A DNA stretch of 63,048 nt, counting the filler, from Octopus bimaculoides (lineage: Eukaryota): NCBI RefSeq assembly GCF_001194135.2. It is 4 parts of 4 records of this genome, joined end to end, with 100 filler letters (N's around TTAATTAATTAA, not from the genome) between each part and the next. Parts side by side here need not be neighbours in the genome. Positions count along the whole stretch, not along the records: positions 16,295 to 32,605 come from NC_068998.1; 3 more parts are not named here. One strand, given 5' to 3'. The position numbers and the translations under genes are program-made. Position 1 is the first letter of the stretch. Each line of letters begins with the position of its first letter. Shown here in pieces: positions 16,295-32,705 of the stretch. The notes under the pieces are model-generated. The model saw nothing but the letters and a program-made list of their open reading frames with translations. It did not search any database and was not told the origin of the DNA.

Positions 16295-17020
16295 TATATA
16301 TATATATTCATATTTACGTGTTTAGGACAGCGAGCTGGCAAAATCGCTTAGCATTTCGTCCGACTTATGGTGCTAGGACATATTCACCCGACTGCGACTT
16401 TCCCGTTTATCTTCTCTGGGTAAAAAAAATTAATAAATAATAAAATTATTATCAGTTGAACACTGAGGCGGATGTAATCAACTCTCAGTCAAAATATTCC
16501 AAACTATTTAATGATCCATTCCCTCCTAGATCCACTTGTAGCGATAATTTGTTTACAGAGTTTCAGCCCAGACAGTTGAACTCAACATAAGCCAGGCAAA
16601 TATTTTGTTTACGACTACAAATTTACACCTCACCTGTATTTGAATACAGCAAGTAGCGAGTAGGAACGTTCAGTCCGATTAAATACTACAGACTCGCAAA
16701 TTCTTCTGTAAATTTACCGAATTATATAAATAATAGCTTAATGTATTGGCTCAAGGCCAGCAATTCCTATGTCGCCATGTCTCACCGATTACATTGATGA
16801 CGGGACATGGCATGAACTGAAAGAGGAAAACATCATGTTGATCTTGACATGATTGGACCTCTGAAGGCCGGATGAAATGTTACTATGCACATATTTCCAA
16901 AGCTCGAATAATTCTACCAGTATATCACCATTTTACAATAGATATACTAAGCAATATGTATAGAATATTATTCCATGACATATATTATAATTTCTTCTCC
17001 AAATTTGTTTTTACTTTTAG

Positions 17021-17109
17021 TCGAATACATTTGTTCGGTCCCTGGCTCAGACAAAGGTTCCCTTTTTGTGCTAATTTATTCGCCGGCCTATTTACGGCGG
17101 TGAAATGTG
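17021..17109 (+). CDS. Candidate exon 3, copy 1, of a small Cys-rich secreted/GPI protein family (phase 2-1)
   Basis: Acceptor ttttacttttag, donor gtaaga; 89 nt: RIHLFGPWLRQRFPFCANLFAGLFTAVKC(G). This is the only frame open in all three copies. Confidence 0.62.
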
Positions 17110-17378
17110 GTAAGATATTTTCATTAACTATTGTAGTTTTACGAGAATTAATAATGTTTCAAAGGATTGAATACATACAATCGTTATTTTGCACTAAATT
17201 TTATTACCTAATATTCCAGTGAACACCTATTTTCATTGAATGGATCTATTATCTGCAACGAAATTGGCTTTTCTAATGTTATGGTTATCACTTAATAATT
17301 CTCATTCAGTTAAGCATAACTATAATCACTGTGTATATTGCGAGTATGTATATAAATATTGTAAGTAATTTCAACGGT

Positions 17379-17748
17379 GAAGGCGCAATGGCTCAGTGGT
17401 TAGGGCAGCGGACTCGCGGTCAAAGGATCGCGGTTTCGATTCCCAGACCGGGCGTTGTGAGTGTTTATTGAGCGAAAACACCTAAAGCCCCACAAGGCTC
17501 CAGCATGGGATGGTGGCGAACCCTGCTGTACTTGTTCACCATAACTTTCTCTCATTCTACCTACCTGTTTATGATGTACCTGTATTTCAAAGGGTCAGCC
17601 TTGTCACACTGTGTCACGCTGAATATCCCCGAGAACACACGTGTCTGTGAAGTGCTCAGCCACTTGCACGTTAATTTCACGAGCAGGCTGTTCCGTTGAT
17701 CGGATCAACTGGAACCCTCAAAGTCGTCAGCGACGGAGTGCCAACAAC
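17379..17748 (+). mobile_element. tRNA-derived SINE family C in intron 3 of the Cys-rich genes
   Basis: A box GGCTCAGTGGTT, B box GTTTCGATTCC, ends cgacggagtgccaacaac. Orthologous copies at 19110-19478 (+) and 31813-32183 (-); independent copy at 34781-35163 (-). Confidence 0.9.
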
Positions 17749-18066
17749 ACTGTATGCAATTTCAAGTATTTAAAATGTCATTAGCAATAAGATATAAATT
17801 TGTTAAGTCGAATCAATTGTTAAATTTTAATTTTTGTTAATTTGCAAATCAATAGAAGTTGGGAACGTACCAAATTGAGGACAGGAAGATTACAATAATA
17901 AAAACGTGCATTTTATATATATATATATTTTTTTGTTACAAGTCATTTTTATTAACGCTCTTTGAAAAGTCAATAAATATAACGAACAAATTAATTGATC
18001 ACCTATTTTCTATTTATTCTAAGTAGAAAATTGGTTTAAGAACCAGCAGTTTTCTAGTTCTTCTAG

Positions 18067-18161
18067 GCAGAGTACTGGCTCAAGAAAATGCTTCTCCTTC
18101 GTTCCGCCTTGAGTCAATATGGATCCTATTATTGCTTCTAATAATATCGGTATTGTTGTGA
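18067..18161 (+). CDS. Candidate terminal exon 4, copy 1: GPI-anchor-type signal
   Basis: Acceptor ttttctagttcttctag; phase 1 continues from exon 3: (G)RVLAQENASPSFRLESIWILLLLLIISVLL*. Small-residue triad N-A-S, polar spacer, 14-residue hydrophobic tail, then stop; AATAAA at 18212-18217. Confidence 0.6.
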
Positions 18162-18751
18162 CGAATGCTGTCTCAGCTGATGCTTATGTATTTCACGTAA
18201 ACATATTCATAAATAAAAACTGATTTCAAATTCTGTATGGTTTCTTTCTTGAAGAACGTAACAATCACTTAAAGTACAGTCGAAATATGAAGAAATCTGA
18301 GAAACAAAACATGTACTAAATTATCCTTCAAATAACTGTACACTAAACCTATAATTTCAATGTAATATAGTGAAATATCATTCTTTCAGTATGCAATTCA
18401 TATCACCGACACGGAAAGTTAGTCCGAAATAACACGCTAAATTAAGAATGAAATAATATTCTGACGTACGTCTAAGAATTGAAAGTTTATACGTTTCAGC
18501 ACTGGGTTATGTTTATCTATGATAAACTTACCCCAAAGAATCAAAATTATGGGGATTAAAGTCATTAAATGAATGGATTTGATTCTANNNNNNNNNNNNN
18601 NNNNNNNNNNNNNNNNNNNNNNNNNNNNNNNNNNNNNNNNNNNNNNNNNNNNNNNNNNNNNNNNNNNNNNNNNNNNNNNNNNNNNNNTATATAGAATGTT
18701 ATTCCATGACATATATTATAATTTTATCTCGAAATTTGTTTTTGCTTTTAG

Positions 18752-18840
18752 TCGAATAAATATGTTCTATGCCTGTTTCAAAAGACACTTCAGTTTTTGT
18801 GCTAATTTATTTGCCGACCTATTTAAGAAGGACAGATGTG
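18752..18840 (+). CDS. Candidate exon 3, copy 2, of the Cys-rich family
   Basis: Acceptor tttgcttttag, donor gtaaga; 89 nt: RINMFYACFKRHFSFCANLFADLFKKDRC(G). Confidence 0.65.
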
Positions 18841-19802
18841 GTAAGATATTTGCATTAACTATTGTAGGTTTGCGAAAATTAATAATGTTTGAAAGGATTG
18901 AATACATACAATCGTTATTTTGCACTAAATTTTATTACCTAATATTCCAGTGAACACCTATTTACATTGAATGGATCTATTATCTGCAAAGAAATTGGCT
19001 TTTCTAATGTTATGGTTATCACTTAATAATTCTCATTCAGTTAAGCATAACTATAATCACTGTGTATATTGCGAGTACGCATATAAATAGTGTAAGTAAT
19101 TTCATGGGTGAAGACGCAATGGCCCAGTGGTTAGTGCAGCGGACTCACGGTCAAAAGACCGCGGTTTCGATTCCCAGATCGGGCGAGGTGAGTGTGTATT
19201 GAGCGAAAACACCTAAAACTCCACGAGGCTCAAGCAGGGGATGCTGGCGTAATCTCTGTACTATTTCACCACAAATTTCTCTCACTCTAACTTTCTGTTT
19301 CTGATGTACTTGTATTTCAAAGGGTCAGACTTGTCACACTGTGTCACGCTGAATATCCCCGAGAACACACGTATCTGTGGAGTGCTCAGCCACTTGCACG
19401 TTAATTTCACGAGCAGGCTGTTCTGTTGATCGGATCAACTGGAACCCTCAAAGTCGTAAGCGACGAAGTGCCAACAACACTGTATGCAATTTCAAGTATT
19501 TAAAATTTCATTAGCAATAAAATATAAGTTATTTGTTAAGTCGAATCAATTGTTAAATTTCTATTTTTGTTAATTTGCAAATCCATTGAAGTTGAGAATG
19601 TACCAAATTGAGGACAGGAAGATTACAATAATAAAAACGTGCATTTTATATATATATATATATATTTTTTGTTACAAGTCATTTTTATTAACGCTAATTG
19701 AAAAGTCAATAAATATAACGAACACATTATTTGATCACCTATTTTCTATTTATTCTAGGTAGAAAAGACGCTAAGGAATCAGCAATTTTTTAGTTCTTCT
19801 AG

Positions 19803-19816
19803 AGAGTATTGGTTGA
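19803..19816 (+). CDS. Candidate terminal exon 4, copy 2: GPI tail out of frame (ends ESIG*)
   Basis: Homologous to 18067-18161 but lacks the first 2 nt (GC) after the acceptor, so phase 1 reads (E)SIG*. An alternative upstream acceptor at 19758 gives (G)RKDAKESAIF*. Either way no hydrophobic tail is made. Confidence 0.4.
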
Positions 19817-20858
19817 ACAAAATGCTCCTCCTTCGATCCGCCTTGAGTCAATATGGATCCTATTATTGCTTCTAATAATATNNNNNNNNNNNNNNNNNNN
19901 NNNNNNNNNNNNNNNNNNNNNNNNNNNNNNNNNNNNNNNNNNNNNNNNNNNNNNNNNNNNNNNNNNNNNNNNNNNNNNNNNNNNNNNNNNNNNNNNNNNN
20001 NNNNNNNNNNNNNNNNNNNNNNNNNNNNNNNNNNNNNNNNNNNNNNNNNNNNNNNNNNNNNNNNNNNNNNNNNNNNNNNNNNNNNNNNNNNNNNNNNNNN
20101 NNNNNNNNNNNNNNNNNNNNNNNNNNNNNNNNNNNNNNNNNNNNNNNNNNNNNNNNNNNNNNNNNNNNNNNNNNNNNNNNNNNNNNNNNNNNNNNNNNNN
20201 NNNNNNNNNNNNNNNNNNNNNNNNNNNNNNNNNNNNNNNNNNNNNNNNNNNNNNNNNNNNNNNNNNNNNNNNNNNNNNNNNNNNNNNNNNNNNNNNNNNN
20301 NNNNNNNNNNNNNNNNNNNNNNNNNNNNNNNNNNNNNNNNNNNNNNNNNNNNNNNNNNNNNNNNNNNNNNNNNNNNNNNNNNNNNNNNNNNNNNNNNNNN
20401 NNNNNNNNNNNNNNNNNNNNNNNNNNNNNNNNNNNNNNNNNNNNNNNNNNNNNNNNNNNNNNNNNNNNNNNNNNNNNNNNNNNNNNNNNNNNNNNNNNNN
20501 NNNNNNNNNNNNNNNNNNNNNNNNNNNNNNNNNNNNNNNNNNNNNNNNNNNNNNNNNNNNNNNNNNNNNNNNNNNNNNNNNNNNNNNNNNNNNNNNNNNN
20601 NNNNNNNNTATATATATATATATACAGAGAGAGAGAGAGAGAGACCGAGATACTCTCTTTTACTCCAACATTTTTTAGTCATTTGACTGCGGCCATGCTG
20701 GTGCACCACCCGTACTCGACCCCAAGACATTCTTTCTAGGCGTAGTACTTATTCTATCCTTCTTGGTTCCCGAACCTCTATGTTACGGGGACTCAACACA
20801 CCAACATTGTTTGTCAGGCGATTATGGCTGGATAAACGCACACACACTTCTATACATA

Positions 20859-20898
<40 letters not shown>

Positions 20899-23085
20899 CA
20901 CACGCACACACATATATATATGTTTTGTGTGTCTGTCTTTTTTCCTTACCATCGCTTGACGAACAATGTTAGTGTGTTCATGTCCATGTAAATTAGGTGT
21001 TCGGCAAAGAGGTCGACAGAATAAGTACCAGACTTAAAAGGTATATGTGATGGGGTGGATTTGTTCGACTAAAGACCAACTTCTAATATGGCCCAAGTTA
21101 AATGAGTGAAACAATTAAAAGAATACATGAATCTAAGAATAATATCTCAGTTTGGTACTTGCATACATAGCTACATACAATAAATATTCAGCCAAAAGGC
21201 TACATAGAACCAACTCCTGCCCATTCTATCATTTGACAGATTAAATTTCGAGAACTTTATGGAACGGTCAGTCTCTTTCAAGTTTGGAATATTACAATAA
21301 TTAGTGACAGCGGTGAAGTCTTTAAAAGTTTGAAAATAAAGAATTCCAAACCAATCCCTGTAAATTTCTACCAGTTCTGAATAAAATAACTGTATACAGA
21401 CATAAAACACACGTGTGTGTCTGTGTGAGCGTGTTTTCGCATACTACGTGCACGATTTTCTACTTTGCTGTGAAGGGTACAATTAACAGACAATTGGTTT
21501 TCCTGGAAGACGCCCTAGGGCCAGAATATGATTAGTAATTTGTGTTATCTCCCAGGATCTGCCAACACTTCAAACGATATTTCTACTCGAATACAATGTT
21601 ATACTTTGTCAGAATGAAATATGGCCTTATGTTTCTTGAGGAAGAAACAGTAGGTTAATTATATCTAATAGTTTATGAATATCCCATAAATATAATACAT
21701 GGCAATGACACATTATAAAATGTAAATTTCACTTCACTTCTGTGACATAAAACAACATTGCGGCTTCGCGGGTGTTTTATATATAAGGTTACAGAATATA
21801 TGTTCATCCACTGCTCCATCGCGTGAATGCTTCACTTCTTAACGATCTTCTTGTTATAAGTAAGTAGATATAATTTCGTTCATACACACACACCCACACA
21901 CACACCCACACAAACACACACANNNNNNNNNNNNNNNNNNNNNNNNNNNNNNNNNNNNNNNNNNNNNNNNNNNNNNNNNNNNNNNNNNNNNNNNNNNNNN
22001 NNNNNNNNNNNNNNNNNNNNNNNNNNNNNNNNNNNNNNNNNNNNNNNNNNNNNNNNNNNNNNNNNNNNNNNNNNNNNNNNNNTATATATATATATATATG
22101 CACATATACACATGTTCTCATATTCTTGCGATGTGCGTACAGTCTTTCATTGATGTGTATATAGACACATGCGTGCTTAAATTGATTCTGTCCATTATTT
22201 CATCTGGTTCATTATGTGTACCGTTTCAGACGAGTGAATATCATTTGATGTTCCTGACTACTGAATTGCTGAGCGAAAAATCGTAGCAAAGTACACACTT
22301 TACTGACAGCAATTGCAGACACAATATTACCTCAGAATTTCGGCGACAAGCGCTCATGTAAAGCATTCAGAACTTTTGCAATCCCCGATAAATTATTGGC
22401 ACTAAATCCCGAGTAACGTACTGCCGAATAGACTCATAGATCTCTTTCGAACATACAACACGTGACTCTCATTCAATTACCCGGAGCAAATGGATCATAT
22501 TAACGAGTGGATATTATTCAATAACGTGTGATAATAAATAGGAACAGAAGAACTTAGCTGTTTGCAACAGTAAGATGACATTATTATTCATCAAACTACT
22601 GACTTGACGCAAAATTTCATACGGAAAATATTTTGCTTCTGAACAATCGAGGAAGGAGTGTGCCAACACGCAATTATGAGAGCAGAATAGAAATTGTAGA
22701 AACGAGTGAGCCAAGAGCAGAAAAATTGTAGAAAGTCAAAGTGAAGATTTAGGAAGTAGTTTACTGAACAAACAGCATTTAGAATGCAAGCTNNNNNNNN
22801 NNNNNNNNNNNNNNNNNNNNNNNNNNNNNNNNNNNNNNNNNNNNNNNNNNNNNNNNNNNNNNNNNNNNNNNNNNNNNNNNNNNNNNNNNNNNACTCGACC
22901 CCAAGACATTCTTTCTAGGCGTAGTACTTATTCTATCCTTCTCGGTTCCCGAACCTCTATGTTACGGGGACTCAACACACCAGCATTGTTTGTCAGGCGA
23001 TTATGGGAGGATAAACGCACACACACTTCTATACATACACACATACACACACACACACACACACACGCACACACACATACACACC

Positions 23086-23118
<33 letters not shown>

Positions 23119-25359
23119 GTATATTTTGTGTGCCTGTCTTTTTTCCTTACCATCGCTTGACGAACAATATTAGTGAGTTCATGTCCATGTAAATTAGGTG
23201 TTCGGCAAAAGAGGTCGACAGAATAAGTACCAGACTTAAAAGGTATATGTGATGGGGTCGATTTGTTCGACTAAAGACCAACCTCTAATATGGCCCCAGT
23301 TAAATGAGTGAAGCAATTAAAAGAATACAAGAATCTAAGAATAATATCTCAGTTTGGTACTTGCATACATAGCTACATACAATAACTATTCAGCCAAATG
23401 GCTACATAGAACCAACTCCTGTCCATTCTATCATTTGACAGATTAAATTTCGAGGACTTTATGGAACGGTCAGTCTCTTTCAAGTTTGGAATATTACAAT
23501 AATTAGTGACAGCGGTGAAGTCTTTAAAAGTTTGAAAATAAAGAATTCCAAACGAATCCCTGTAAATTTCTACCAGTTCTGAATAAAATAACTGTATACA
23601 GACATAAAACACACGTGTGTGTCTGTGTGAGCGTGTTTTCGCACACTACGTACAAGATTTTCTACTTTTCTGTGAAGGGTACAATTAACAGACAATTGAT
23701 TTTCCTGGAAGACACCCTGGGGCCAGAATATGATTAGTAATTTGTGTTATCTCCCAGGATCTGCCAACACTTCAAACGATATTTCTACTCGAATACAACG
23801 TTATACTTTGTCAGAATGAAATATGGCCTTATGTTTCATGAGGAAGAAACAGTAGGTTAATTATATCTAATAGAATATGAATATCCCATAAACATAATGC
23901 ATGACAATGACACGTTATAAAATGTAAATTTCACTTCACTTCTGTGACATAAAACAACATTGCGGCTTCGCGGGTGTTTTATATATAAGGTTACAGAATA
24001 TATGTTCATCCACTGCTCCATCGCGTGAATGCTTCACTTCTTAACGATCTTCTTGTTATAAGTAAGTAGATATAATTTCCTTCATACACACACACACACA
24101 CTCGCACAAACACACACACACACACACGCACCCACACGCATATATATATGCACATATACACATGTTCTCATATTCTTGCGATGTGCGTACAGTCTTTCAT
24201 TGATGTGTATATAGACTCATGCGTGCTTAAATTGATTCTGACCATTATTTCATCTGGTTCATCATGTGTTCCAGTTCAGACGAGTGAATATCACTTGCTG
24301 TTCCTGACCAGTAAATTGCTGAGCGAAAAACCGTAGCAAAGTACACACTTTACTGACAGCAATTGCAGACACAATATTACCTCAGTAATTCTGCGACAAC
24401 CGCTCATGGAAAGCATTCAGAACTTTTGCAATCTCCGATAAATTATTGGCACTAAATTCCGAGTAACATACTGCTGAATAGACTCATAGATCTCTTTCGA
24501 ACAAACAACACGTGACTCTCATTCAATTACCCAGAGCAAATGGATCATATTAACGAGTGGATATTATTCAATAACGGGTGATAATAAATAGGAAGAGAAG
24601 AACTTAGCTGTTTGCAACAGTAAGATGACAATAGTATTCATCAAACTACTGACTTGACGCAAAATTTCATACGGNNNNNNNNNNNNNNNNNNNNNNNNNN
24701 NNNNNNNNNNNNNNNNNNNNNNNNNNNNNNNNNNNNNNNNNNNNNNNNNNNNNNNNNNNNNNNNNNNNNNNNNNNNNNNNNNNNNNNNNNNNNNNNNNNN
24801 NNNNNNNNNNNNNNNNNNNNNNNNNNNNNNNNNNNNNNNNNNNNNNNNNNNNNNNNNNNNNNNNNNNNNNNNNNNNNNNNNNNNNNNNNNNNNNNNNNNN
24901 NNNNNNNNNNNNNNNNNNNNNNNNNNNNNNNNNNNNNNNNNNNNNNNNNNNNNNNNNNNNNNNNNNNNNNNNNNNNNNNNNNNNNNNNNNNNNNNNNNNN
25001 NNNNNNNNNNNNNNNNNNNNNNNNNNNNNNNNNNNNNNNNNNNNNNNCAGGAATTATAATACATAATACTACAGATTTCGATCTTATCCACTTCCTCAAA
25101 GTTTCCACACAAGTCATCCCCGATACAAATAAAAATCATATTTAGAATATGTGAAGTCTTCAAATTTTATAAAATATGCATTTAAATAGAGTACCTGAAT
25201 ATTTATTTCGACATATGAAACAATAGTAATAAAATTTGTTTGCATTCATTTCAAAGGAGTCCAATTTATGTCACACCATTAGAATTTTGCGCCACTCTAA
25301 TATATTTCAATTTTTTAAAATTTTAACAGTTGGAACTGAGTATGATTCGAGTAACAACG

Positions 25360-25393
25360 ATGAAATACTGTGTATGTATTCTTGTCTGTGTTC
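25360..25393 (+). CDS. Candidate coding exon 1 (signal-peptide start), plus-strand copy
   Basis: ATG AAA TAC TGT GTA TGT ATT CTT GTC TGT GTT C|gtaagt = MKYCVCILVCV, phase 1, strong donor. Its exon 2 would lie beyond the 100-N join at 26027. Confidence 0.5.
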
Positions 25394-25514
25394 GTAAGTA
25401 ACGTGTAATTTTTTTCATAAATTATTTTATGCGTAATATATGATTCTTTTCTCTCTTTCTCGACATTTATGTGTGTGAGAGAGGGAGTATGTGTATGTGT
25501 CTTTTGCTGTATAT

Positions 25515-25566
<52 letters not shown>

Positions 25567-26361
25567 GTGTATGTATGTATGTGTGTGTGTGTCTGTACAT
25601 GTTGTTGGGCGTGAGTGCATATGTGTGTATCACAAATACTGCTTTGAACCCCGACTTAGAGAAAGCAGATGTCTTGGATTCAGTCGCGTTTATTTGTTTC
25701 AATTTAGACACGATTTTTCAAGAACAGAAGGATGCATTACAAAGAATCATTCAGGTATGATTGGCCTCGCGACCAGCCCGAACCATTTAGATAGGGAGAC
25801 CGATTCGGACAAGGATTCTGGTCAATATTTGCGGTTTTGTTTTTGTTAATTTTTGAGAGTGGTGTGGTGTATTTTTAGTATTTCTTGCTCGTGAACGCAG
25901 TCGAGTTTATTTCAGATATTCTGGTTTTAAAAATCATTTCCGGCTAATCGTTGGGAGGAAGTTGGTGTTTTCTTCGCGGAGATTTGGTCTCTCTAATTAT
26001 TCTTGTTGATATTCTAATAAACAATTNNNNNNNNNNNNNNNNNNNNNNNNNNNNNNNNNNNNNNNNNNNNNNNNNNNNNNNNNNNNNNNNNNNNNNNNNN
26101 NNNNNNNNNNNNNNNNNNNNNNNNNNCAACCGGACGGAAATCACTCGTAGAGGGCACTAAATTGCTCATCAGTTATGACCCAAAATATTAATACTGATTT
26201 TCGCACAATTAACGGTAAAACTGTATTTCCTTGAGATTTCGTCCTCTATTACTCGTTGTTTATTTACAATGTATTTTTCATTTATGATAAATATATACAT
26301 TAATACATTCAATTATTAAAACTATGAATGAAAATAATCATTATAAAGAAAGCGAACTTAC

Positions 26362-26461
26362 TTGCACAATAATGTGTCAGGATCACGTATAGGATATACT
26401 CTCATAGTTTTATTACAAGTTTTCTTGGCCTGTTCGTAGCAAAATTCTGATACCGCAGCAT
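26362..26461 (-). CDS. Candidate exon 2 of the Cys-rich family (phase 1-2)
   Basis: Acceptor aaatttatag (weak pyrimidine tract), donor gtaagt; 100 nt open: (H)AAVSEFCYEQAKKTCNKTMRVYPIRDPDTLLC(N). Phase-compatible with exon 1 upstream on the same contig and with the 89-nt exon 3. Confidence 0.58.
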
Positions 26462-27505
26462 CTATAAATTTATTATTAATTCAATAGACATTTATGTTTT
26501 ATCGTTTTCTTTATTTCACTCATTGAAGAGTTGTTACGTATTGGTACTGACATTATGAATTTAGCACAAGAAATATTTCCGAACATGGAACACATGATAT
26601 ATGCTTATGTTTCCGAGACACTAAATATTAACGATTCCAATGAACCATCACACAAAATGTAAGCTGGTTCTGAATCAACGCAATCAGAAAGGCAAACAGG
26701 TACACATATTCATATATGTTTAAATGGGCTTCTTGCATTTTCCACTATCTCCAATTTTATTCATCGTTCTGTTGATGTAGTAGAGGAAACTGAACCAGTG
26801 TAGCACGTATTGTTTCTCGATCCTAGACGATGTTAATGAGGAGCAAACGTCTCAAATACACAGTCATACAAGTGCTTAGTGTTATAATTTGAAGGACGAT
26901 TTTGTTTAAATTTCGTTTTTGCGTTCATAGTTCGGATCTTTTATCATTTTTTGATCATACAACAACATTGGCAATAAGAAATCTGAGAGTTTATGGTCTA
27001 AGAATAAAAATAAAATGACAACTATATTGGTGTCGTCTTTTCCAAATTATTTATTAGAATATGAACAAGAACAATAAGAGAGACCAAATCTCCGCGAAGA
27101 AAACACCAACTTCCTCTCAACGATTAGCCGGAAATGATTTTTAAAACCAGAATATCTGAAATAAACTCGACTGCGTTCACGAGCAAGAAATACTAAAAAT
27201 GCATCACACCACTCTCAAAAATTAACAAAAACAAAACCGCAAATATTGACCAGAATCCTTGTCCGAATCGATCTCCCTATCTAAATGGTTCGGGCTGGTC
27301 GCGAGGCCAATCATACCTGAATGATTCATTCTAATGCATCCTTCTGTTCTTGAAAAATCGTGTCTAAAGTGAAACAAATAAACGCGACTGAATCCAAGAC
27401 ATCTGCTTTCTCTAAGTCGGGGTTCAAAGCAGTATTTGTGATACACACATATGAAGTCACGCCCAACAACATGTACAGACACACACACACACACATACAT
27501 ACATA

Positions 27506-27546
<41 letters not shown>

Positions 27547-27663
27547 ATACAGCAAATGACACAGACACATACTCTCTCTCACACACATAAATGTCGAGAA
27601 AGAGATAAAAGAATCATATATTACGCATAAAATAATTTATGAAGAAAATTACACGTTACTTAC

Positions 27664-27697
27664 GAACACAGACAAGAATACCTATACAGTATTTCAT
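27664..27697 (-). CDS. Candidate coding exon 1 (signal-peptide start), minus-strand copy
   Basis: MKYCIGILVCV + C|gtaagt. Spliced to 26362-26461 it gives MKYCIGILVCVHAAVS-EFCYEQ..., a plausible 16-aa signal peptide with A-x-S cleavage site. Confidence 0.58.
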
Positions 27698-29145
27698 CGT
27701 TGTTACTCGAATCATACTCGGTTCCAACTGTTAAAATTTTAAAAAATTGAAATATATTAGAGTGGCGCAAAATTTTAATGGTGTGACTAAATTGGACTCC
27801 TTTGAAATGAATGCAAACAAATTTTATTACTATTGTTTCATATGTCGAAATAAATATTCAGGTACTCTATTTAAATGCATATTTTATAAAATGTTTCTCT
27901 TTGAAGACTTCACATATTCTAAATATGATTTTTATTTGTATCGGGGATGTCGTGTGTGGAAACTTTGAGGAAGTGGATAAGATCGAAATCTGTAGTATTA
28001 TGTATTATAATTTCTCGTCTTGTTGCTGTTGCTGAAGTGAACTTCACGTTCTTTTGTGGTTACGTTTATAATATTCATTTCACAGTCGTATATGCTCTTA
28101 ATTCTAGAACCTCCGCTCCATTTTCAGAGCTTGCATTCTAAATGCTGTTTGTTCAGTAAACTACTTCCTAAATCTTCTCTTTGACATTCTACAATTTTTC
28201 TGCTCTTGGCTCACTCGTTTCTACAATTTCTATTCTGCTCTCATCATTGCGTGTTGGCACACTCCTTCCTCGATTGTTCAGTAGCAAAATATTTTCCGTA
28301 TGAAATTTTGCGTCAAGTCAGTAGTTTGATGAATAATATTGTCATCTTACTGTTGCAAACAGCTAAGTTCTTCTCTTCCTATTTATTATCACCCGTTATT
28401 GAATAATATCCACTCGTTAATANNNNNNNNNNNNNNNNNNNNNNNNNNNNNNNNNNNNNNNNNNNNNNNNNNNNNNNNNNNNNNNNNNNNNNNNNNNNNN
28501 NNNNNNNNNNNNNNNNNNNNNNNNNNNNNNNNNNNNNNNNNNNNNNNNNNNNNNNNNNNNNNNNNNNNNNNNNNNNNNNNNNNNNNNNNNNNNNNNNNNN
28601 NNNNNNNNNNNNNNNNNNNNNNNNNNNNNNNNNNNNNNNNNNNNNNNNNNNNNNNNNNNNNNNNNNNNNNNNNNNNNNNNNNNNNNNNNNNNNNNNNNNN
28701 NNNNNNNNNNNNNNNNNNNNNNNNNNNNNNNNNNNNNNNNNNNNNNNNNNNNNNNNNNNNNNNNNNNNNNNNNNNNNNNNNNNNNNNNNNNNNNNNNNNN
28801 NNNNNNNNNNNNNNNNNNNNNNNNNNNNNNNNNNNNNNNNNNNNNNNNNNNNNNNNNNNNNNNNNNNNNNNNNNNNNNNNNNNNNNNNNNNNNNNNNNNN
28901 NNNNNNNNNNNNNNNNNNNNNNNNNNNNNNNNNNNNNNNNNNNNNNNNNNNNNNNNNNNNNNNNNNNNNNNNNNNNNNNNNNNNNNNNNNNNNNNNNNNN
29001 NNNNNNNNNNNNNNNNNNNNNNNNNNNNNNNNNNNNNNNNGTTTGTGTGTGTGTGAGTGAGTGTAATTAATAAAAAACCAAAGGAAATAAAAAGAGTAAT
29101 AGCACAGCGTGAGGACCCGGTACATGCAAAAGTGAGATATTTGTG

Positions 29146-29195
<50 letters not shown>

Positions 29196-30966
29196 CGTGC
29201 GTGTGTGTGTGATTCTATATATATATATATATACATGTGCATATATATATGCGTATATATATATATATATATATGTGTGTGCGTGTGTGTGTATGTGTGT
29301 GTGTGTATGTGTTTGTGTGTGTGAGTGTAATTAATAAAAAAAACAAAGGAAATAACAAGAATAATAGCACAGCGTGAGGACCTGGTACATGCAAAAGTGA
29401 GATATTTGTGTATATATATATGTGAGTGTGTGTGTGTGTCTGTGTCTGTGTGTGTGTATGAACGAAATTATATTTACTTACTTATAACAAGAAGATCGTT
29501 AAGAAGTGATGCATTCACACGATGGAGCAGTGGATGAACATATATTCTGTAACCTTATATATAAAACACCCGCGAAGCCGCAATGTTGTTTTATGTCACA
29601 GAAGTGAAGTGAAATTTACATTTTATAATGTGTCATTGCCATGTATTATATTTATGGGATATTCATAAACTATTAGATATAATTAACCTACTGTTTATTC
29701 CTCAAGAAACATAAGGCCATATTTTATTCTGACAAAGTATAACATTGTATTCGAGTAGAAATATCGTTTGAAGTGTTGGCAGATCCTGGGAGATAACACA
29801 AATTACTAATCATATTCTGGCCCCAGGGCGTCTTCCAGGAAAACCAATTGTCTGTTAATGGTACCCTTCACAGCAAAGTAGAAAATCTTGTACGTAGTAT
29901 GCGAAAACACGCTCACACAGACACACACGTGTGTTTTATGTCTGTATACAGTTATTTTATTCAGAACTGGTAGAAATTTACAGGGATTCGTTTGGAATTC
30001 TTTATTTTCAAACTTTTAAAGACTTTACCGCTGTCACTAATTATTGTAATATTCCAAACTTGAAAGTTCTTGAAAGTTCTCGAAATTTAATCTGTCAAAT
30101 GATAGAATGGACAGGAGTTGGTTCTATGTAGCCTTTTGGCTGAATAGTTATTGTATGTAGCTATGTATGCAAGTACCAAACTGAGATATTATTCTTAGAT
30201 TCTTGTATTCATTTAATTGTTTCACTCATTTAACTGGGGCCATACTAGAACACGGTCTTTAGTCGAACAAATCGACCCGTCACATATACCTTTTAAGTCT
30301 GGTACTTATTCAGTCGACCTCTTTGCCGAACACCTAATTTACATGGACATGAACACGCTAACATTGTTCGTCAAGCGATGGTGAGTAAAAAAGACAGACN
30401 NNNNNNNNNNNNNNNNNNNNNNNNNNNNNNNNNNNNNNNNNNNNNNNNNNNNNNNNNNNNNNNNNNNNNNNNNNNNNNNNNNNNNNNNNNNNNNNNNNNN
30501 NNNNNNNNNNNNNNNNNNNNNNNNNNNNNNNNNNNNNNNNNNNNNNNNNNNNNNNNNNNNNNNNNNNNNNNNNNNNNNNNNNNNNNNNNNNNNNNNNNNN
30601 NNNNNNNNNNNNNNNNNNNNNNNNNNNNNNNNNNNNNNNNNNNNNNNNNNNNNNNNNNNNNNNNNNNNNNNNNNNNNNNNNNNNNNNNNNNNNNNNNNNN
30701 NNNNNNNNNNNNNNNNNNNNNNNNNNNNNNNNNNNNNNNNNNNNNNNNNNNNNNNNNNNNNNNNNNNNNNNNNNNNNNNNNNNNNNNNNNNNNNNNNNNN
30801 NNNNNNNNNNNNNNNNNNNNNNNNNNNNNNNNNNNNNNNNNNNNNNNNATATATATATATATATACGTATACATACATAGGAGAGGATTCACAAAATAAC
30901 AGGCAAAGACAGGTGGTGTAGACAACAAACAAACGTATTAGTTTAACCCTCGGGAGATGAAGACGT

Positions 30967-31002
30967 CTTTAACGTTTCGACTGTACGCTCGTCCACAGAA
31001 AG
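30967..31002 (-). ncRNA. Second minimal hammerhead-like motif (degenerate), inside a (TA)n-flanked repeat at about 30860-31075
   Basis: Minus strand CTTT-CTGTGGA-C-gagcgtacagtc-GAAAC-GTT-AAAG: perfect stem I and palindromic AACGTT helix III; core variant CTGTGGA and a partly broken stem II. Confidence 0.4.
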
Positions 31003-31483
31003 GAACACAGAAAGAAACAGGAGTGACAATAAGGAATGTGTAGTGGGTAGCGAGCCATCATAGCGAAACCTAATATATAAGGTATCAATTTCTAGACGTA
31101 CGTCACAATATTATTTCATTCTTAATTTGGCCTGTTATTTCGGACTAACTTTCCGTGTCGGTGATATGAATTGCATACTGAAAGAATGATATTTCACTAT
31201 ATTACATTGAAATTATAGGTTTAGTGTACAGTTATTTGAAGGATAATTTAGTACATGTTCTGTTTCTCAGATTTCTCCATATTTTGACTGTAGTTTAAGC
31301 GATTGTTACGTTCTTCAAGAAAGAACCATACGGAATTTGAAATCAGTTTTTATTTATGAATATGTTTACGTGAAATACATAAGCATCAGCTGAGACAGCA
31401 TTCGTCACAACAATACCGATATTATTAGAAGCAATAATAGGATCCATATTGACTCAAGGCGGATCGAAGGAGGAGCATTTTGT

Positions 31484-31497
31484 TCAACCAATACTCT
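31484..31497 (-). CDS. Candidate terminal exon 4, copy 3: GPI tail out of frame
   Basis: Same 2-nt loss as copy 2 (ends ESIG*); the hydrophobic IWILLLLLIISVLL* frame is still present in the DNA down to 31405 but out of phase. Confidence 0.4.
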
Positions 31498-32452
31498 CTA
31501 GAAGAACTAAAAAATTGCTGATTCGTTAGCGTATTCTCTATCTAGAATAAATAGAAAATAGGTGATCAATTAATTTGTTCGTTATATTCATTGACTTTTC
31601 AATAAGCGTTAATATAAATGACTTGTAACAAAAAAATATATATATATAAAATGCACGTTTTTATTATTGTAATCTTCCTGACCTCAATTTGGTACATTCT
31701 CAACTTCAATGGATTTGCAAATTAACAAAAATAGAAATTTAACAATTGATTCGACTTAACAAATTTATATTTTATTGCAAATGAAATTTTAAATACTTGA
31801 AATTGCATACAGTGTTGTTGGCATTCCGTCGCTTACGACTTTGAGGGTTCCAGTTGATCCGATCAACAGAACAGCCTGCTCGTGAAATTAACGTGCAAGT
31901 AGCTGAGCACTCCACAGACACGTGTGTTCTCGGGGATATTCAGCGTGACACAGTGTGACAAGTCTGACCCTTTGAAATACCAGTACATCAGAAACAGGAA
32001 GTTAGAGTGATAGAAATGTGTGGTGAAAGAGTACAGCAGGTTACGCTACCATCCCCTGCTTGAGCCTCGTGGAGCATTAGGTGTTTTCGCTCAATAAACA
32101 CTCACATCGCCCAGTCTGGGAATCGAAACCGCGGTCCTATGACCGTGAGTCCGCAGCACTAACCACTAGGCCATTGCACCTTCACCCTTGAAATTACATA
32201 CAATATTTATATGCATACTCGCAATATACACAGTGATTATAGTTATGCTTAACTGAATGAGAATTATTAACTGATAACCAAACCATTAGAAAAGCCAATT
32301 TCATTCAAGATAATAGTTCCATTCAATGAAAATAGGTGTTCACTGGAATATTAGGTAATAAAATTTAGTGCAAAATAACGATTGTATGTATTCAATCCTT
32401 TGAAACATTATTAATTTTCGTAAAAGTACAATAGTTAATGCCAATATCTTAC

Positions 32453-32541
32453 CATATCTCTCCTTCTTAAATAGGTCGGCAAATAATTTAGCACAAAAAC
32501 CGAAGTGACTTTTGAAACAGGCAAGGAACATATTTATTCGA
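32453..32541 (-). CDS. Candidate exon 3, copy 3, of the Cys-rich family
   Basis: Acceptor tttgcttttag, donor gtaaga; 89 nt: RINMFLACFKSHFGFCAKLFADLFKKERY(G). The last Cys is replaced by Tyr. Confidence 0.6.
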
Positions 32542-32705
32542 CTAAAAGCAAAAATAAATTTCGAGATAAAATTATAATATATGTCATGGAATAACATTCT
32601 ATATANNNNNNNNNNNNNNNNNNNNNNNNNNNNNNNNNNNNNNNNNNNNTTAATTAATTAANNNNNNNNNNNNNNNNNNNNNNNNNNNNNNNNNNNNNNN
32701 NNNNN

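Follow-up and report, generated by a model that had tools for sequence, protein, structure and literature searches.

Accelerated exon evolution is well known from venom and recognition families such as snake PLA2, three-finger toxins and conotoxins, the LU domain of Ly6/uPAR proteins combines 8–10 cysteines with a beta-sheet three-finger fold, and the cysteine-rich domain (CRD) of Frizzled (Fz) holds 10 cysteines. In RGM proteins, the N-terminal domain is composed of three helices and three disulfides; it engages BMP2/GDF5 at the type-1-receptor epitope, and Arg100 and Leu103 of RGMB, at the start of helix 3, are involved in ligand binding (PMC7354924). The closest relatives of the locus described here belong to an octopus family that public annotation lists only as 'uncharacterized', with no domain assigned, and no literature on it was found under octopus glycosylphosphatidylinositol (GPI) or cysteine-rich proteins, RGM in octopus, or the LOC identifiers. 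In the reference genome of Octopus bimaculoides, chromosome CM046618.1 carries three same-strand tandem genes of this family (g1, g2, and g3; locus L001) spaced about 7.7 kb apart, which follow a common plan of 37-, 100-, and 89-nt exons plus a tail exon, with phases 1, 2, and 1. Here we describe positions 16295–32605 (from NC_068998.1) of a window, the whole 63,048-nt stretch of O. bimaculoides DNA (GCF_001194135.2). This AT-rich and badly assembled piece very probably contains parts of about three tandem paralogues of such a small-protein gene, a real gene family that was recovered from exons of 34–100 nt and that views based on open reading frames (ORFs) miss.

The gene, as reconstructed, would start with an exon carrying the start codon and the larger share of the signal peptide, followed by a 100-nt exon with the end of the signal peptide and Cys1–3, an 89-nt exon with Cys4–6, and a last exon with a short linker and a hydrophobic C-terminal tail. 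The initial annotation had proposed these four exon types with canonical GT–AG sites and phases start/1, 1/2, 2/1, and 1/stop, and all of them were recovered position for position, as were the copy numbers (two exon 1s, three exon 3s, and three exon 4s); the copies are named below after the repeat units in which they lie. Exon 1 is present as copy D2 (27697–27664, − strand; 34 nt encoding MKYCIGILVCV plus 1 nt, donor GTAAGT, homologous to the start exon of g2 and g3) and as copy D1 (25360–25393, + strand; 34 nt, MKYCVCILVCV, donor GTAAGT), the latter lying on the strand opposite to D2 and with no exon 2 assembled downstream. Intron 1 (26462–27663, −; 1202 nt, phase 1) is unbroken in one contig, holds a TG/CA microsatellite, and leads to the single assembled copy of exon 2 (26461–26362, −; 100 nt, phase 1 to 2, TTTATAG acceptor, GTAAGT donor). 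This exon encodes HAAVSEFCYEQAKKTCNKTMRVYPIRDPDTLLC, carries the signal-peptide end, Cys1–3 and the YP..PD motif, and agrees with exon 2 of g2 and g3 in length and phase. Exon 3 (89 nt, TTTTAG acceptor, GTAAGA donor) is found as A1 (17021–17109, +; RIHLFGPWLRQRFPFCANLFAGLFTAVKC), the most diverged copy, in which Cys4 is replaced by Trp, as A2 (18752–18840, +; RINMFYACFKRHFSFCANLFADLFKKDRC), which keeps all three cysteines, and as A3 (32541–32453, −; RINMFLACFKSHFGFCAKLFADLFKKERY), in which Cys6 is replaced by Tyr. The coding part of exon 4 in A1 (18067–18161, +) encodes GRVLAQENASPSFRLESIWILLLLLIISVLL followed by a stop and is in register with exon 4 of g1, g2, and g3; an AATAAA signal lies at 18212–18217, 50 nt past this stop.

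The other two last exons, A2 (19803–19881, +, cut by the gap at 19882) and A3 (31405–31497, −, with AATAAA at 31354–31349, 50 nt past the stop codon), lack the first two bases of exon 4 that are present in g1, g2, g3, and A1. When entered through the same acceptor, both end in ESIG and a stop (19814–19816 in A2 and 31486–31484 in A3); the tail frame itself remains open in A2, and in A3 an AG 4 nt downstream of the acceptor would restore VLVEQNAPPSIRLESIWILLLLLIISVLL and its stop. The C-terminal tail is thus in frame in A1, and is reached in A2 and A3 only through the AG 4 nt downstream. The spliced products of the initial annotation, which have 105 aa when the A1 tail is used and 78 aa with A2/A3 (same acceptor), were reproduced exactly. 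By comparison with the family, however, exon 4 is frameshifted in two of its three copies, and the initially annotated six-cysteine spacing C-x7-C-x16-C-x8-C-x7-C-x12-C is complete only when exon 3 of A2 is used, being broken by Trp at Cys4 in A1 and by Tyr at Cys6 in A3. None of the 11 splice sites and neither start codon is damaged, no coding frame is interrupted, and the proposed frame of exon 3 is the only one open in all three copies. The donors used make up 6 of the 20 GTAAG pentamers found on both strands of the piece, and together with the open frame and an end-to-end match to an annotated protein at E 1e−33 (see below) they place the exon set far beyond chance.

Some further features of these exons were recorded. 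Both copies of exon 1 have an in-frame upstream ATG (MIRVTT-) 18 nt before the start (27715–27698, −, and 25342–25359, +), which would give a signal peptide of 22 residues; because g2 and g3 have no such ATG, the ATG of MKYC... is regarded as the homologous start. A 44-nt segment upstream of the exon 4 acceptor (18022–18066 in A1, at the same place in A2 and A3) is absent from the reference genes, is bounded by two near-identical acceptor motifs, and is 18–20% diverged between A1 and A2/A3, compared with 4–5% in the rest of the intron. Use of the upstream one of these acceptors, with the 44-nt segment read as coding, was rejected on account of in-frame TAGs. ORFs of 85–126 codons run through exon 3 into the introns (16872–17222, +; 18573–18953, +; 32340–32597, −) and are misleading in the ORF track; divergence is concentrated in or near the 89-nt exon and is not spread along them.

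Homologues were sought with the contiguous exon 2 peptide (26361–26468, −) in a full-HMMER search of 1.84 billion representative proteins, which returned four clusters, all of them from octopus. The single-module match, P0005 (XP_052830353.1 (XP_052830353.1-5), 'uncharacterized protein LOC128249853', O. bimaculoides, 106 aa), is 53% identical to the exon 2 peptide at residues 12–45. The composite of exons 1–4 is colinear with P0005 over the full length (BLASTP, 46% identity, 105/106 aa, E 1e−33, one gap), and the match takes in the exon 2/3 junction (C-NRI), the cysteine spacing, and the hydrophobic C-terminal tail. In a word-indexed homology search the composite and the family alignment returned nothing and P0005 returned only itself, a limitation of the index, given that P0005 is itself a row of that alignment. 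At the nucleotide level, positions 26251–26366 of repeat unit U match the first part of intron 2 of g1 at 84% identity, and repeat unit A is 74–80% identical to the g1 region at 893–1987 of L001, which comprises the end of intron 2, intron 3, exon 4, and the 3′ flank. Since U and A match consecutive parts of g1 in the same orientation, both halves of the composite map onto one gene, and this mapping to a single chromosome-level gene is the strongest support available, short of RNA, for the exon 2/3 join.

An alignment of 20 family sequences has six near-invariant cysteines and the motif YP..PD..C.R[LI]..[YF]..C. Compared with the single-module LOC128249853 type, the composite agrees in full-length colinearity and in exon plan, and with exon 3 of A2 also in the six-cysteine spacing. 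Multi-module relatives are LOC128249887 (203–233 aa, three modules), which directly follows the single-module genes (locus L002), LOC128248155 (540–546 aa, about nine modules), and CAI9735841.1 of O. vulgaris (293 aa, four modules). In LOC128249887, the only multi-module gene whose exons were read, each module consists of one exon 2-type and one exon 3-type exon, and as such a pair measures 189 nt with phase 1-1, in-frame multiplication of the module is readily explained. The tail of two multi-module proteins, P0002 and P0003, is similarly hydrophobic; P0001 had no locus on record. The first exon of LOC128249887 (MKIIICIFFLICG) is present twice, at 18243–18281 and 21925–21963 of L002, 3.7 kb apart, which fits the many annotated isoforms of this gene. 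The annotated 123-aa product of g3 was reproduced only by skipping the tail exon and using a terminal exon at 21253–21398 of L001; the family may have alternative C-termini, or the annotation may be in error, and if this product is taken at face value, anchored and non-anchored forms may both be normal in the family. Octopus-only homologues, colinearity with LOC128249853, the four-exon structure common to that gene and its two tandem neighbours, and the all-helical model described below support the initial annotation of a lineage-specific, disulfide-rich, secreted or cell-surface helical family.

The piece consists of nine contigs (16295–18587, 18688–19881, 20609–21922, 22083–22792, 22893–24674, 25048–26026, 26127–28422, 29041–30399, and 30849–32605) with N runs between them (gaps inside the range include 28423–29040 and 30400–30848) and with TG/CA and TA microsatellites at most contig ends. 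Self-BLAST of 16295–32605 delimited the repeat units A, B, C, D, and U. Unit A1 (16959–18491, +) runs from the last part of intron 2 through exons 3 and 4, with intron 3 between them, into the 3′ flank; A2 (18688–19881, +) and A3 (32605–31076, −) were placed by self-BLAST and alignment, and the unit A copies are 90.6–94.2% identical (self-BLAST). Units B (20714–21922, +; 22893–24124, +; 30399–29421, −) and C (22090–22792, +; 24140–24674, +; 28422–28128, −) are intergenic, with low and uniform divergence and no exon-like hypervariable tract. The two copies of unit D (D1, 25052–26026, +; D2, 28012–27045, −) are 95% identical, and the single-copy unit U (27044–26127, −) contains exon 2 together with 235 nt from the start of intron 2. 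Exon 1, intron 1, and exon 2 lie entirely within the contig 26127–28422, and in all three copies exon 3, intron 3, and exon 4 share a single contig, the only exon cut by a gap being exon 4 of A2; the join of exon 2 to exon 3 spans contigs in every case, in agreement with the linkage described in the initial annotation. The orders B before C and C before D before U are proven by contiguity within contigs, and the order A before B rests on support across gaps only. A search for additional exons, which covered the unique 664 nt that precede A1, the 235 nt that follow exon 2, and, by a divergence scan, units B, C, and D, found none.

Units A, A, B, C, B, C, D, which make up the left half, are on the + strand, and units U, D, C, B, A, which make up the right half, are on the − strand, so that the layout of the scaffold is a pseudo-palindrome, which is more likely a mis-scaffolded tandem array than a real inverted duplication; the contig order within the scaffold is unreliable. 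Intron 3 of all unit A copies contains an insert of about 360 nt that resembles a short interspersed nuclear element (SINE) with a tRNA-like head (17377–17742, +; 19118–19472, +; 32175–31820, −), and it matches four places (77–82%) in an 89-kb locus of O. vulgaris (L003), whose only sequences in common with the window are these SINE copies. ARAGORN detected no tRNA in the piece, the SINE-like head included. Sub-threshold Rfam matches to mir-297, mir-3149, mir-1277, sno_ZL1, and SCARNA7 (at 20793–20986, 22973–23162, 24027–24201, and 29177–29304) were dismissed as artefacts because all of them lie in or beside TG/CA and TA simple-repeat tracts.

A three-way alignment of the unit A copies was used to compare divergence in exons and introns. 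Exon 3 differs at 23/89 positions between A1 and A2, 25/89 between A1 and A3, and 7/89 between A2 and A3, compared with 3–6% (about 22/521) in the flanking parts of intron 3 (Fisher p ~1e−9 for A1–A2 and A1–A3), and exon 3 and the start of exon 4 have diverged several-fold faster than the intron between them. No tract comparable to exon 3 was seen in the divergence scan of units B, C, and D. Most of the changes are at codon positions 1 and 2, with dN/dS values of 2.3 and 4.0 (undefined for A2–A3, with 7 non-synonymous and 0 synonymous differences) that come from 89 nt and are individually non-significant. Exon 3 is 61–67% identical to that of g1, compared with 78–80% for the adjacent intron; among g1, g2, and g3 the exon is better conserved than the intron, and dN/dS across the wider family ranges from 0.4 to 1.25. 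As a caveat, divergence is somewhat raised also in the 30–50 nt flanking exon 3. The divergence pattern marks exon 3 as an evolutionary unit of its own, whose limits are roughly the splice sites, and excludes neutral decay as its explanation; it points to diversifying selection on an exposed domain surface, or to shielding of that surface from an intron-homogenising gene conversion. The GC content of exon 3 is 46% in A1 and 34–35% in A2 and A3, a shift that may point to an unseen paralogue as the donor in biased gene conversion. With an exon that outpaces its intron, the locus is a concise case, outside venom genes, of diversifying evolution or of shielding from conversion.

Structure prediction, one of the checks proposed with the initial annotation, was carried out with AlphaFold on P0005, using a 21-row alignment that included the window exon peptides. 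The full-length model reached a mean pLDDT of 87.9, and the module alone a pLDDT of 89.7 and a pTM of 0.74, with helices at residues 2–18 (kinked or broken), 28–39, and 44–56; the module of about 60 residues is thus confidently predicted to be a three-helix bundle that holds the six cysteines. The Pfam check on the composites matched no family. DUF19, which the initial annotation had suggested for the module, gave no match in the three composites or in the 20 family sequences at E ≤ 10 and is not supported, and the only recurrent signal is RGM_N (PF06535), the sole Pfam family matched by more than one of the 20 family sequences (8/20), with the four-module relative P0003 scoring 37.9 bits against a gathering cut-off of 24.2. 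In a control, 6 of 10 real modules matched RGM_N (15–20 bits), compared with 1 of 10 shuffled modules in which the cysteines were kept fixed. A profile of the module searched against 177,635 PDB sequences had the RGMB N-terminal domain at the top (E 0.032), followed by the Frizzled-8 CRD (E 0.1–0.2, over 27 columns), and hhalign against the N-terminal domains of human RGMA/B/C (sequences checked against PDB chains) gave P 0.0015 and a probability of 17% over 31 columns that cover Cys3-x8-Cys4-x7-Cys5. By our numbering, with the register confirmed by the N120 sequon, the ligand-binding residues Arg100 and Leu103 of RGMB stand at +1 and +4 after Cys5, where many multi-module repeats have Arg/Lys and Met/Phe/Leu, and the window copies Ala and Phe. 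A mature composite searched against PDB sequences returned only a chance match to CD72 (E 0.26).

Several observations weigh against a four-exon gene family in this piece and were considered together with the explanations that they would favour. No contig connects exon 2 with exon 3, and the contig chain A, B, C, D, U puts exons 3–4 upstream of exons 1–2, so the join is not demonstrable from the piece and requires a further tandem unit that is unassembled here; read-through of the exon 2 donor, moreover, meets an immediate stop. All this would suit a chimera assembled from exons 1–2 and 3–4 of two different genes, which is nevertheless very improbable, since the composite is colinear with P0005 across the CNRI junction, a 100-nt exon is joined in this phase to one of 89 nt in the three reference genes, units U and A correspond to successive stretches of a single reference gene, and each half carries an odd number of cysteines (3 + 3). 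The pseudo-palindromic scaffold conflicts with the one-strand reference cluster of O. bimaculoides, and with nine short contigs joined by N gaps of estimated size, a layout that switches from + to − midway, and breaks at TA/TG microsatellites, the three copies and the palindrome could together be an assembly artefact derived from haplotypes or from collapsed and re-expanded repeats of one gene. We give this only a small chance, as the copies differ by 4–6% in introns and by 8–28% in exon 3, plus indels, which in our judgement is far above the expected haplotype difference, and as the chromosome-level assembly of O. bimaculoides has a same-strand tandem array with a spacing of ~7.7 kb. A more substantial concern is that every 3′ half departs from the family consensus by a lesion (Trp for Cys4 in A1, a frameshift in A2, a frameshift plus Tyr for Cys6 in A3), that a single exon 2 is assembled, and that none of ten exact composite variants occurs in a collection of 15 billion proteins; exact look-up of the window ORFs likewise found no record, and the gene models are known here from genomic sequence alone. 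The copies might accordingly be decaying family pseudogenes, for which the gene model would be right as ancestry only, with no functional product. The changes on the A1 branch are also biased from AT to GC (11/19), which fits biased gene conversion as well as selection. Against decay speak the 11 intact splice sites, the two start codons and the intact coding frames, the 5–6 times higher and mostly non-synonymous divergence of exon 3 relative to the intron, where neutral decay predicts equal divergence and a dN/dS of ~1, the tail-less product of A2, which keeps six cysteines and would be a plausible secreted isoform (a peptide from these copies is, e.g., VYPIRDPDTLLCNR), and the tail-skipping g3 product in the reference annotation, so that pseudogenes appear possible and, on balance, rather unlikely. 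Taken as a whole, the explanation by a four-exon gene family is one that we hold with high confidence.

The origin of the domain is a more evenly divided matter. That the module is a remote homologue of RGM_N has, in our estimation, about an even chance. An octopus-specific helical cysteine-rich fold that arose independently of RGM_N, with the Pfam signal produced by cysteine spacing and helical composition, comes a little short of that. In favour of an independent fold, Foldseek searches of PDB with either the full-length or the module model gave no meaningful match and none to RGM, a tool that is weak on 60-residue helical domains, and the hhalign probability is low. P0005 and the window composites (E ≤ 10 for the latter) have no Pfam match, the single-module proteins have none to RGM_N, and one of the Cys-fixed shuffles reaches 15 bits, which indicates that the RGM_N signal lies partly in the cysteine spacing. 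Of the spacings only Cys3-x8-Cys4-x7-Cys5 agrees and the others differ, RGM_C has no Pfam match in the composites or in the 20 family sequences, the Frizzled-8 CRD follows next in the profile search at E 0.1, and the window residue at the position of RGMB Arg100 is Ala. Homology, on the other hand, is favoured by RGM_N being the sole recurrent Pfam family, by the excess of real over shuffled modules, by the four-module protein that passes the gathering score, by the first rank of the RGMB N-terminal domain among all PDB sequences searched, and by the fact that both are three-helix, six-cysteine domains of proteins with GPI-type tails.

If the four-exon gene is expressed as reconstructed, its precursor would enter the endoplasmic reticulum, where a 16-residue signal peptide (n-region MK, h-region YCIGILVCV, c-region HAAVS) would be cut after Ser16 (A-V-S/E), and three disulfides would lock the helical bundle, which also carries a putative N-K-T glycosylation sequon. 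The A1 tail resembles a GPI signal by hydropathy, with Asn82-Ala-Ser, a 7-residue spacer (PSFRLES), and 14 hydrophobic residues up to the C-terminus, and a product with this tail could receive a GPI anchor near Asn82-Ala-Ser and thereby present its binding module on the outer cell surface; the signal-peptide and GPI calls were made by sequence rules and no predictor, which adds to the points against the reconstruction listed above. With the 2-nt deletion, A2 and A3 would either yield a tail-less, secreted form of 78 aa or be pseudogenes. The product would thus most likely act as an extracellular binding module, held at the cell surface, or secreted on loss of the tail. By analogy with RGM, a role in ligand trapping or as a co-receptor is the best guess at a function, of low confidence, because the RGM N-terminal domain belongs to GPI-anchored proteins and binds BMP/GDF ligands; on this analogy the partner could be a BMP/GDF ligand, which we hold to be rather unlikely. 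Equally speculative, and doubtful when taken jointly, is the wider scenario in which an RGM N-terminal domain was taken from its two-domain context and expanded in octopuses as stand-alone or multi-repeat modules, GPI-anchored or secreted, which would act as co-receptors or decoys that adjust BMP/GDF (TGF-beta family) signalling, the window copies being young paralogues that diversify their binding surface and switch between anchored and soluble forms through a 2-nt indel in the tail exon. If the RGM_N link were true, this would be the first case of that BMP-binding domain outside RGM proteins and would offer a handle on lineage-specific control of TGF-beta-family signalling. Being clustered, modular (through the phase 1-1 exon pair), fast-evolving, and so far found in Octopus only, the family is a candidate for a cephalopod-specific surface or secreted recognition system.

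Among known systems, Ly6/uPAR proteins are similar in general terms, with their small size, a signal peptide split by a phase-1 intron, a GPI-type tail, and clustered fast-evolving paralogues; they were rejected as relatives, given six cysteines, an all-helical model, and no Pfam match to UPAR_LY6 in the octopus proteins. The Frizzled CRD was rejected as well, with no Pfam Fz match and profile matches in PDB at E 0.1–0.2 only. With venom-type families the window genes have in common tandem paralogues whose exon for the mature peptide has gathered changes, most of them non-synonymous, at a higher rate than the intron beside it. Those families keep their cysteine framework, whereas here a cysteine is lost in two of the three window copies. 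RGM's N-terminal domain (PDB 4UHY, 4UI0, 4UI1, and 6Z3H) resembles the module, whose helices are predicted, in its size of ~60–70 residues, three helices, six cysteines, the identical Cys3-x8-Cys4-x7-Cys5 spacing, a common [FY]C..L..Y..C motif, and its place in GPI-anchored proteins; the statistical links between the two are weak, though they recur. The RGM domain differs in the Cys1–2, Cys2–3, and Cys5–6 spacing (x4/x22/x21, compared with x7/x16/x12 in the window), and RGM as a whole protein has an RGM_C or partial von Willebrand D domain and a GDPH autocleavage site, whereas the window product of 78–105 aa has neither. The multi-module octopus relatives have in common with the window genes the module of ~63 residues and, in LOC128249887, the pair of a 100-nt-type and an 89-nt-type exon; they carry the module 3–9 times instead of once and more often have a basic residue after Cys5. 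The LOC128249853 genes differ in several details: they are distinct from the window copies, whose exon 1 has one codon fewer, whose intron 3 has the SINE-like insert, and whose exon 4 is preceded by an extra segment of 44 nt; A1 and A3 have each lost one cysteine, and A2 and A3 have the 2-nt deletion. Otherwise the LOC128249853 genes are the closest system, with a signal peptide, the six-cysteine spacing x7, x16, x8, x7, x12, the motif YP..PD..CNR, an APPS-x-RLES linker (APPSLRLES in P0005) followed by a hydrophobic C-terminus, a tandem array, and the same four exons and phases. The window copies are unannotated members of an annotated, uncharacterised octopus family rather than a new kind of system.

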